NCBI RefSeq assembly: GCF_000737315.1
Contig: NZ_JMCB01000001.1
Coordinates: 20,001-268,000, forward strand
Length of the DNA: 248,000 nucleotides
Source of the DNA: Hyalangium minutum
Lineage (GTDB): Bacteria; Myxococcota; Myxococcia; Myxococcales; Myxococcaceae
Reading direction: 5' to 3'
Below are positions 171,700 to 173,701 of the stretch, one piece after another. Position 1 is the stretch's first letter. Each line of letters starts with the position of its first letter. Both the position numbers and the translations under genes were made by a program. The notes beneath the pieces are model-generated. The model had not been told where the DNA came from. It was given only the letters and a program-made list of their open reading frames with translations, and made no database searches.

Positions 171700-172383
171700 T
171701 CACTTCCAGTTCGTCCCGGTTGGCGGCCCCTGGTGGAGCGGATCCCAGATGTACTCCGCGATGGGGGTCAGCTTCATATTTGTAAAGCCGTGCCGCTTGA
171801 CGAACCCAGCGAAGCGCTCCGCGACGAAGATGGTCCCGGGCTCGCCCCGAGGCCGGAAGACGTCCTCGCCCTGCCACGTCCCCTGCTCCAAGGCGAAGCC
171901 GTGAATGGAGTCCACTCCAGTGGCTCGGCACTCTGGACACGTGACCGGAGCGTTGCGACGGAGACGACTCCGCGCTTCGTCTAAAGCGCCTCGGCCCCAA
172001 CAAGGAGTCGCTGCCCTATACGAAGAAGCCGCCTCCAGCTTGGAGCCCTTGCGCTTCCGTCGCACACGCGCCACCTCCACGGCATGACTGCCGAGCAGTC
172101 CGGTGAGCCCCTCGGCTCGAAACGCCTCCGCCATGCGCTGGGAAATGAGCACGCTGTTTCCAGGCCCTTCGATGAAGTCGCCAAGGGTCTGGCCATGCAA
172201 CTCCAACGTCACTCGGTAGGGAGGCAACCACTCCTTCATACCAATGGGCTCGTGACACTGAGGGCATCGAGGCGCAGGCCCGTAGCGCACGGGCTCGGCC
172301 CCCTCGGACTGGGTGTCGTACGCCCCCCACACGTCCGCCTTGAGCACGAAGAACCGTGGATCAGGATTTAGGTCCGAAGCCAT
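171700..172383 (-). CDS. Double-CxxC immunity-like protein
   Basis: RCPQC and TCPEC; paralog of 238074..238766. Confidence 0.7.
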
Positions 172384-172500
172384 TGGGAAACCTCTCCAGC
172401 ATGTCCTTGCGGTTGTAGATGTCGCGAAGAAACGCTTCGAGTTCTTCCTGAGTGGCCTTGCTGTACCGCCTCAACCACAGGGGCACTCTACGTCCCTTAC
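172373..172500 (-). pseudogene. C-terminal remnant of a toxin homologous to 238756..239332
   Basis: ...[18 protein letters not shown] versus [18 protein letters not shown]. Confidence 0.65.
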
Positions 172501-173075
172501 GAGGCGTCTGGCGTTTCTTCCTGCACGGCCAGAGAGAAGGGGTAGATCGAGCGGTGGCCGATGTTCGAGTGGTCGACGGTAAGGTAAAGCTCACCCGCGA
172601 TCGAAATCACCGCTTGCGGAGGGGGGCTGACCTGGCTCTTGAACCAGGCCTCGGCCTCCGGAAGCGTCGAGAAGGAGGCGACGGGTGGCGGTAGCCCTTC
172701 ACGAACACGTGCTCCGAGGAAGTACTGAAGGACGGGATGGGGAAAGATGCGGCGTTCCTGCAAATCGCGGTTGTAGACGAGCAGATGGTACTGGTCCGCA
172801 ATCAAGACGTATGCAGAAGAGGGAGGTGCAGGCTGCTCCTTCAACCAGTTCTCCGCCTCCTCGCGTGAGCCGAACGCCGCCGCGACGCGCGGAGGTTCGT
172901 CGGACGCCAGATGCTTCCGGTAATCCTCAAAGGCATAAACCTGCCCCGTGGATTCGATGAACAGAAGAGCGTCAAACAGGACGTCACGCACTTCCTGAGG
173001 AGCATGGACCGAAGCGTTTGAGCCAAGACCCGCAAGGAACTCCATGGCACTGGAAAGGAGCTTGCGCGTACTCAT
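172497..173075 (-). CDS. Hypothetical protein with internal duplication (immunity-like)
   Basis: two F.S..EAE.W...Q..PP...V.IA repeats; follows a lipoprotein gene. Confidence 0.6.
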   Translation of the reverse strand: MSTRKLLSSAMEFLAGLGSNASVHAPQEVRDVLFDALLFIESTGQVYAFEDYRKHLASDEPPRVAAAFGSREEAENWLKEQPAPPSSAYVLIADQYHLLVYNRDLQERRIFPHPVLQYFLGARVREGLPPPVASFSTLPEAEAWFKSQVSPPPQAVISIAGELYLTVDHSNIGHRSIYPFSLAVQEETPDAS

Positions 173076-173701
173076 TGCGCCCCCCCAGCAACACTGTCCT
173101 CGGGTTGGCTTTCGGATGACGTCATCAGCACCACGGGAGCAAGAACCAGAAGCCCAGCCCCAGCGGAGATGACCACAAAGGCGATCCCAGCAACGGTGAT
173201 GACGCTGCCCACCAAGACCTCCTTCCGGTGGCGCTTCAGCCAGTCGATCAGACCATCCACTGTCGTGAACTCCTGGGGCCGGAGCCGCTCCAGTTCCCGA
173301 CAATCATCGTAGGCCTGCTGGCATTCGCGACGGCAGAACTCCGACTTGCCGCCCATCTTGCGAGGGGACGTATAGCTTCCATACCCAGGAGGAAGAGGAC
173401 GCGACATGCATTTTTGGTAGCACTCTTGATTCTCCTGGTCACAGTCTCGAGGCCGGGCCGCAGCAGGTAGAACGCCTCCTGATCGCGCTTCGTTGGCTGA
173501 CCGAAACCGGTAGGCCGAGAAGTCGAAGCGCTCGGCGGGCTGCCACGCGTGGGTGACCTGACCATCGGGGTGCGCTTGGAGAACAAGCACGAAGTGCTCA
173601 GGATTTGCTGGGCTCGGCACTTCTGGCGAACGAGAACGGCTGGCGCTGCATGCCACCAGCAAGGTGCTCAGGCCCACGGCGAGGAGCTTCTTAAGCATCA
173701 T
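173072..173701 (-). CDS. Lipoprotein with Cys-rich domain and C-terminal TM
   Basis: lipobox LVAC; C...C...C...C...C...C. Confidence 0.65.
   Translation of the reverse strand: MMLKKLLAVGLSTLLVACSASRSRSPEVPSPANPEHFVLVLQAHPDGQVTHAWQPAERFDFSAYRFRSANEARSGGVLPAAARPRDCDQENQECYQKCMSRPLPPGYGSYTSPRKMGGKSEFCRRECQQAYDDCRELERLRPQEFTTVDGLIDWLKRHRKEVLVGSVITVAGIAFVVISAGAGLLVLAPVVLMTSSESQPEDSVAGGAQ

Follow-up and report, generated by a model that had tools for sequence, protein, structure and literature searches.

We analysed a window of 248,000 nucleotides (nt) of Hyalangium minutum DSM 14724 (contig JMCB01000001.1; the coordinates below are window positions) with regard to a locus at 171.7 kb, where an intact immunity gene, named imm171 here, lies beside the remnant of a toxin gene. 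Four elements were found on the minus strand, all of them where a preliminary description of this DNA had placed them: a lipoprotein gene (173072..173701; 209 amino acids, aa), a partner gene (172497..173075; 192 aa) whose start overlaps the lipoprotein stop codon (ATGA), a toxin stub consisting of a 41-codon open frame (172361..172486), and imm171 itself (171700..172383; 227 aa). The results showed that the locus holds an orphan immunity gene together with the 3' stub of its toxin gene, an outcome well known in polymorphic-toxin systems (PMC5361080).

The stub is homologous to the end of a toxin C-terminal domain, and its codons at 172376-172477 (minus strand) correspond to the last 34-37 residues of a secreted toxin of about 185 aa. 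The preliminary description had proposed to align the locus with a second one at 238 kb, and in this alignment stub residues 4-37 were 59% identical over 34 aa to the C-terminus of the 238-kb toxin (tblastn E 3e-7), while other members of the family matched at up to 75% (blastp-short E down to 3e-23), so that the predicted homology is far beyond chance. The match spans the region from a conserved 'WL' motif to the C-terminal 'RFPNGF' of the family, and no toxin homology was detected upstream of about 172486, where the 3' end of the partner gene lies. The statement that only the last ~40 codons of a toxin homologous to 238756..239332 were left was thus borne out. The conserved NHH and HCGYQxWH motifs are absent from the stub, which is therefore incapable of toxicity.

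The same alignment gave 63% identity over 225 aa (E 1e-103) between the products of imm171 and imm238, the intact immunity gene of the 238-kb locus (238074..238766, minus strand; 230 aa), confirming that the two are paralogues. The imm171 open reading frame (ORF) is full length and retains every family-invariant residue, including two CxxC motifs, C40/C43 and C149/C152, both of which are kept across the family. In comparison to curated models, imm171 scored just under the cutoffs of PF09535 (Gmx_para_CXXCG; E 4e-5, 23.5 bits, cutoff 25) and PF07791 (Imm11; E 1.4e-4, 21.7 bits, cutoff 22.1), and it matched TIGR02264, whose NCBIfam name is 'SitI6 family double-CXXCG motif immunity protein', at E 5e-3 (16 bits, cutoff 100). 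The PF09535 score of imm238 was 25.0 bits, equal to the cutoff of 25, while against TIGR02264 imm238 too stayed far under the cutoff. Judged by these profile scores, imm171 is a distant Imm11/SitI6-like relative and not an equivalog. A sequence-profile search of the immunity family against PDB gave no match.

The linkage of this family to toxins is shown by gene context. An intact toxin gene followed by an imm171 homologue of ~225-230 aa was found at five independent loci (in L014, L015, L016-L018 and L019), among which L015 is a second H. minutum contig (JMCB01000011), and the same order was found in L020, with the match to the toxin there covering its C-terminal half only. Overlaps of 11-23 nt between the immunity start and the 3' end of the toxin gene were measured in L014, L015, L016 and the 238-kb locus, and in L019 and L020 the two genes abut. 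A scan of metagenomes with imm171 recovered two further toxin-immunity pairs. From this context and the domain architecture described below, the assignment of the imm171 family as immunity proteins appears well supported, with its membership of the curated families being distant. The description of imm171 as an immunity gene without its toxin agreed with these results, since only a non-functional 3' stub is left beside the intact gene.

For features of the toxin family, homologue counts were based on the best 120 of 429 homologues of the 238-kb toxin after repair of its reading frame. Nearly all of these 120 proteins are 180-195 aa long, they come from Hyalangium, Stigmatella and other Myxococcaceae, and they are often annotated as 'wall-associated protein precursor'. 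The family layout (~185 aa) comprises a hydrophobic signal region, a helical N-terminal domain with a Cys pair and the invariant segment ...PGE(G/T)TLVSFCKQG...C, an acidic low-complexity linker, and a C-terminal domain of ~95 aa with the motifs C-x-GQNHH(I/V)ISRPIA, SHCGYQxWHRxVDxEV and RFPNGF. When the toxin profile was searched against 1.8 billion representative proteins, 611 clusters were found, most of which matched only over the last ~95 profile positions and at the very C-terminal end of proteins of ~120 to 2753 aa; the domain corresponds to positions ~90-187 of our profile A2, as in residues 2640-2752 of one protein (P0400). Five of the eight long proteins examined were Rhs/YD proteins (807-2753 aa) carrying the domain C-terminal to the Rhs-associated core, and because it is also found at the C-terminal tips of such proteins, the ~95-aa domain is a polymorphic-toxin C-terminal domain. 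In the definition of Zhang et al. 2012, as quoted in PMC5361080, polymorphic toxins carry one C-terminal domain on unrelated delivery regions including Rhs; the ~95-aa domain was found on unrelated N-termini, Rhs among them, and is followed by an immunity gene. This 'NHH' domain is widespread, has a cognate Imm11-like immunity protein, and is without a curated family model.

To determine which of the elements is the insert, the locus was compared with its syntenic relatives. Its right edge is a convergent, syntenic DUF1444-like gene (170296..171690, plus strand; 464 aa). Over ~18 kb, three metagenomic relatives (L008, L009 and L010) are collinear with the window at a nucleotide identity of 89-92%, in the order ABC-F, an 816-aa permease, lipoprotein, partner, 19 nt, the convergent DUF1444-like gene, ABC-F, DEAD helicase and EF-G, and L012 has the same gene order as L008; in none of these four is there a toxin or immunity gene between the partner and the DUF1444-like gene. 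The lipoprotein gene is syntenic in L008, L010, L011, L012 and L005, and it is preceded by the permease (~816 aa) in L008, L011 and L012. By blastn, the match between the window and L008 stops at 172490, the 3' end of the partner gene, and restarts at 171700, with only 11 nt of L008 (10210-10220) between the two blocks, so that an insert of ~785-789 bp (171700..172489), consisting of the stub and imm171, replaces ~11 nt of the 19-nt spacer of the insert-free relatives. The direction of the event is shown by this comparison: because the lipoprotein and partner genes sit at the same site in toxin-free relatives, they are resident and vertically conserved, and the stub with imm171 is the insert.

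The preliminary description had read the locus the other way round, namely that an incoming SitAI-like lipoprotein-partner cassette overwrote the 5' part of a resident toxin; this would be comparable to the displacement of effectors in arrays of the type VI secretion system (T6SS) or of Rhs. Some features of the locus agree with this idea, in that the stub lies within ~10 nt of the partner stop codon, the G+C content of the pair is ~0.60 in comparison to ~0.68 for the flanks, the pair is found in unrelated contexts in H. rubrum (L006) and C. fuscus (L007), and displacement that leaves orphan immunity genes behind is documented in Vibrio (PMC5361080). However, the pair has the permease and the DUF1444-like gene as its neighbours also where neither toxin nor immunity gene is present, as in L008, L009, L010 and L012, and its divergence from relatives (84% nt identity) is consistent with that of the flanks: in comparison to L008, identity was 84% for the partner gene, 92% for the DUF1444-like region from window position 171700, and 84-92% for the flanks. 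The lower G+C content and the unrelated neighbourhoods may rather indicate that the lipoprotein-partner pair is an old accessory module.

The nature of the pair also argues against the overwriting of a toxin. The window lipoprotein has the lipobox LLVAC, six conserved Cys residues and a conserved C-terminal transmembrane helix that had escaped the preliminary description, and the partner is a predicted cytoplasmic protein with tandem alpha/beta repeats. We collected 88 homologues of the lipoprotein and 133 of the partner, always as an adjoining pair, and the lipobox rule, a PROSITE PS51257-type pattern, was passed by 68 of the 88 lipoproteins. An alignment of 15 lipoprotein homologues covers their full length and shows six invariant Cys residues, the transmembrane helix and no variable C-terminal module, which makes the protein unlike a SitA toxin because its family is conserved over the whole length and is without a polymorphic C-terminus. 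No toxin, immunity or SitA/SitI family was matched by the lipoprotein or the partner in Pfam and NCBIfam. The label SitAI given earlier to the pair was therefore not upheld, and we regard the overwriting of a resident toxin by the pair as highly improbable. As for the partner, sequence-profile searches of Pfam, NCBIfam and PDB were negative, and a Foldseek search with its AlphaFold2 (AF2) model (predicted local distance difference test score, pLDDT, 84) gave no PDB fold match at E <= 0.001; some sources label it 'head protein'.

Two other differences from the relatives were observed near the pair. The permease gene is represented in the window by a relic of 137 nt (173740..173875, minus strand; MacB/FtsX type) that matches internal stretches of this gene in L008, L005 and L012 at 84-90% nt identity, while ~2.2 kb upstream and ~0.2 kb downstream of the relic are missing; a 97-aa ORF (173698-173991, minus strand) that was called as a gene spans this relic and is probably spurious. 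In addition, a 503-aa gene of L008 (2021-3540) with a weak match to N-acetylglucosamine (GlcNAc) 2-epimerase is absent from the window at ~176695-176705, representing another insertion or deletion nearby.

The ends of the insert are tightly defined. Its right end is the imm171 stop codon, ~9 nt from the stop codon of the DUF1444-like gene, and the stub starts within ~10 nt of the end of the resident spacer. Instead of a target-site duplication, only similar short motifs were found at the insert ends, and these are already present in the uninterrupted L008 spacer, GACGTGAAGGTGGCAAAGG, which resembles the toxin breakpoint region (GACGAnGAAG...GTGGCTnnAGG). We consider it probable that a ~785-bp fragment with the 3' end of a toxin gene and its complete cognate immunity gene came to lie in the ~19-nt spacer, leaving a non-toxic stub and a retained immunity. 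As a leading guess for the mechanism, a complete toxin-immunity pair would have inserted between the partner and the DUF1444-like gene, and the 5' part of the toxin would then have been deleted between short direct repeats, GACGTnnAG..GTGnC in the spacer and GACGAnGAAG..GTGGC in the toxin.

The junction microhomology would be equally compatible with the capture of a pre-truncated fragment, i.e., the last ~100 nt of a toxin gene together with the immunity gene, through illegitimate or microhomology-driven recombination, by which immunity is acquired without the toxin. The insert is indeed minimal, with its right end at the immunity stop codon and its left end exactly at the start of toxin homology, no trace of toxin 5' sequence or of a promoter region was found, and the corresponding site in L005 is also without a toxin. 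On the other hand, such a capture cannot be told from a deletion between the same microhomologies, selection for an intact partner gene would also have confined the endpoint of a deletion to the short spacer, and the searches, among them the metagenome scan with imm171, yielded no donor sequence. We hold truncated capture to be conceivable though somewhat doubtful, and keep a deletion after the insertion of a complete pair as the leading guess. The DUF1444-like flank was also used to scan genome contigs, and this was uninformative on the ancestral state because the three loci obtained (L002-L004) each have a different downstream neighbourhood.

A second organism, represented by L005, has an immunity gene at the same site. 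Its partner gene is 90% identical to that of the window, and it shares with the window the left junction sequence CGTAGAGTGC and an early TAA stop of the partner gene (172497-172499 in the window), which ends three codons earlier than in L008 (...QET*, 10201-10211); because this early stop is common to both, the window and L005 are suggested to be sister lineages. An imm171 homologue (80% aa identity) lies directly beside the DUF1444-like gene in L005, and between the partner and this homologue there is a 7.2-kb block (4975-12193) with no recognisable toxin. The block contains ORFs of 309 and 420 aa, WD40 repeats and an AAA_21/AAA_15 ATPase, and could be a defence-type island; several apparent frameshifts were observed in the L005 contig, perhaps as assembly errors.

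To compare substitution rates between imm171 and the L005 copy, one apparent frameshift of uncertain origin in the latter was first removed in silico. The ratio of nonsynonymous to synonymous substitution rates (dN/dS) was 0.18, the same value was obtained between imm171 and imm238, and the neighbouring resident genes gave 0.12-0.22. Because of this low ratio, imm171 appears to be under purifying selection, as indicated by the sequence comparison. Thus an intact immunity gene, a non-functional toxin and evidence of selection were found together at 171.7 kb.

If imm171 were a neutral leftover that has simply not decayed so far and has no present function, the loss of the cognate toxin would be accounted for, as would the lack of a close intact cognate pair in databases, where nothing matches the stub at more than 75% or, outside L005, the immunity protein at more than 69%. 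We regard this explanation as unlikely, as imm171 is a full-length ORF with all family-invariant residues, its dN/dS of 0.18 was obtained over a synonymous divergence (dS) of 0.70, the related L005 copy is retained at the same toxin-less site (its single frameshift being of uncertain origin), and of the three toxin copies found in H. minutum two are broken, whereas none of the three immunity genes is.

H. minutum thus has at least three modules of the family: in L015 the toxin is intact, at 238 kb it is frameshifted, and at 171.7 kb only the stub is left. The paralogous toxin gene at 238 kb (238756..239332, minus strand) is full length and, as compared with three intact homologues, has one extra G in a GGG run (238995-238997) which leads to a premature TGA (238958-238960); the gene may be a true pseudogene, or the extra G may be an error of sequencing. 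Its immunity gene, imm238, is 86% identical to that of L016. In L015 the intact toxin (P0039) lies next to an immunity gene of its own, which shares 61% identity with imm171; this intact 225-aa ORF (5551-6228), 3' of P0039, had no gene call in the source collection.

Since H. minutum thus carries at least one intact toxin of the family and the ~95-aa domain also occurs on Rhs proteins, imm171 might guard against a toxin from another locus of this genome, such as the JMCB01000011 paralogue or an Rhs protein with the domain. We give little credence to this possibility, in that P0039 is already accompanied by an immunity gene of its own and no other copy of the domain was found within the 248-kb window. 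Most likely, imm171 would still neutralise a matching toxin delivered by neighbours, and the earlier proposal that the immunity gene was retained is plausible. In terms of expression, the Shine-Dalgarno sequence of imm171 (GGAGAGG) lies inside the toxin stub and the imm171 start overlaps the last stub codons. A scan of the coding strand between the partner and imm171 detected no terminator-like site, and a promoter scan of the region detected no sigma-70-like site. Because the Shine-Dalgarno sequence and start are kept and no terminator-like site was seen, read-through is plausible, and imm171 is probably transcribed from the lipoprotein-partner operon.

Several observations weigh against the reading of imm171 as a retained immunity gene brought in with the 3' end of its toxin. 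The junction microhomology is short and could be a coincidence. No intact toxin was found at this site, either in the contig scan with the DUF1444-like flank or in the metagenome scan with imm171. The toxin itself had no Pfam, NCBIfam or PDB match in sequence-profile searches, and its matches to Ribonuc_2-5A (13 of 24 members, best E 1e-3) and to AHH (PF14412; one of 24 members, E 0.1) were below the cutoffs. Finally, the dS between imm171 and the L005 copy, 0.70, is twice the value of 0.33 for the adjacent partner gene. Because of this difference, the vertical orthology of imm171 and the L005 copy is uncertain, and allele replacement or an independent insertion at the same permissive spacer is possible.

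With regard to the activity of the toxin, the matches to Ribonuc_2-5A (KEN) were judged unreliable, given that they cover a non-catalytic part of the profile and stay under the cutoff. In the AF2 model of the toxin, which is moderately confident (pLDDT 77), the elements follow each other as strand (HH), strand and helix (WH), an order as in the beta-beta-alpha-metal fold, and a Foldseek search with this model gave zero PDB matches. Together with the single AHH match, the order of elements in the model suggests that the toxin may be an HNH/EndoVII (AHH)-like 'xHH' nuclease.

Orphan immunity genes influence the coexistence of strains, and the locus described here provides a clean and datable myxobacterial case outside Myxococcus. 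The finding that the immunity gene is intact in all three H. minutum modules fits the view that immunity outlasts toxicity, and the synteny offers the lesson that a neighbouring gene pair need not be the displacing element. Only the uncurated toxin domain and its small non-lipoprotein carrier are mildly novel, and the current understanding of polymorphic toxin systems is unchanged by these findings. It may be ventured, as a tentative proposal that we would not call likely, that in the Cystobacterineae a previously undescribed 'NHH' domain is borne by a Sec-secreted carrier that is not a lipoprotein, and that its immunity genes spread or persist by themselves as minimal ~0.8-kb cassettes via microhomology. 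If this were true, the ~185-aa carrier would point to delivery by a route different from outer-membrane exchange, and the capture of cassettes into intergenic spacers would be a way of gaining immunity without the toxin.

Among known systems, the module can be compared first with SitA toxins, which are outer-membrane lipoproteins with family-specific N-terminal escort domains and C-terminal polymorphic nucleases, transferred in a TraAB-dependent manner (PMC8546572, PMC5562445). Six SitA families are distinguished by the N-terminal escort domain (PMC8546572), and SitA4 and SitA6 carry AHH nucleases (PMC8546572, PMC5562445). The module resembles SitA6/SitI6 (TIGR02269/DUF2380 and TIGR02264) in having a small toxin with a signal peptide, a low-complexity linker and a C-terminal xHH domain, an overlapping double-CxxC immunity gene of ~230 aa, and several paralogous pairs per myxobacterial genome. 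Unlike SitA6, however, the H. minutum toxin has no canonical lipobox, with Phe at -1 and Lys at +2, and its profile has no DUF2380/TIGR02269 match; the immunity protein differs from SitI6 in that it reaches only 16-25 bits in comparison to cutoffs of 25 (Pfam) and 100 (TIGR).

Similar differences were seen among the toxin homologues. No lipobox of the PS51257 type was found in any of the 120 toxin homologues, whose conserved context is LVSFC-KQ, usually with Phe at -1; their signal region contains an acidic residue, and Lys is found at +2 in 114 of 120. For lipoproteins of M. xanthus, the lack of Lys at +2 is taken to indicate outer-membrane localisation (PMC5562445), and the Lys at this position in most of the toxins thus argues against outer-membrane sorting. 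Neither the repaired toxin nor its homologues matched the SitA models of NCBIfam and Pfam, including DUF2380/TIGR02269, and hhalign of the toxin family against a DUF2380/SitA6-type protein of H. rubrum, which has the canonical lipobox LLTGC, returned a probability of 0.8%. The preliminary description had referred to SitAI-type lipoprotein toxins, which move by outer-membrane exchange, and this label was not supported for the lost toxin: with no lipobox, Lys at +2 and no significant match to DUF2380/TIGR02269 or AHH, delivery by that route is unsupported. The H. rubrum protein, which also has an RHH motif, forms a pair with a Gmx_para_CXXCG gene (L006, 3026-4440), ~3.6 kb from the lipoprotein-partner copy of that genome.

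A likeness is also found in the T6SS immunity arrays of Vibrio cholerae, in which orphan immunity genes are accompanied by effector 3' remnants (PMC5361080), and in the orphan modules of Rhs and contact-dependent inhibition (CDI) systems, so far as these are cited in PMC5361080. As in the V. cholerae orphan modules, an intact immunity gene has outlived its toxin, a short remnant of the 3' part of the toxin gene directly precedes it, paralogous complete or decaying pairs are present elsewhere in the genome, and the toxin domain is also borne by Rhs proteins. The imm171 module differs in that it is not part of an array that follows a gene for a delivery system or the conserved N-terminal region of a toxin; instead, one insert of ~785 bp is flanked by two convergent and unrelated genes of housekeeping type, and no incoming toxin-immunity module displaced the toxin of imm171. 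With the Rhs/YD polymorphic toxins, the family shares the same ~95-aa C-terminal domain, whereas in Hyalangium and its relatives this domain is carried by a stand-alone secreted protein of ~185 aa with an N-terminal domain of its own.

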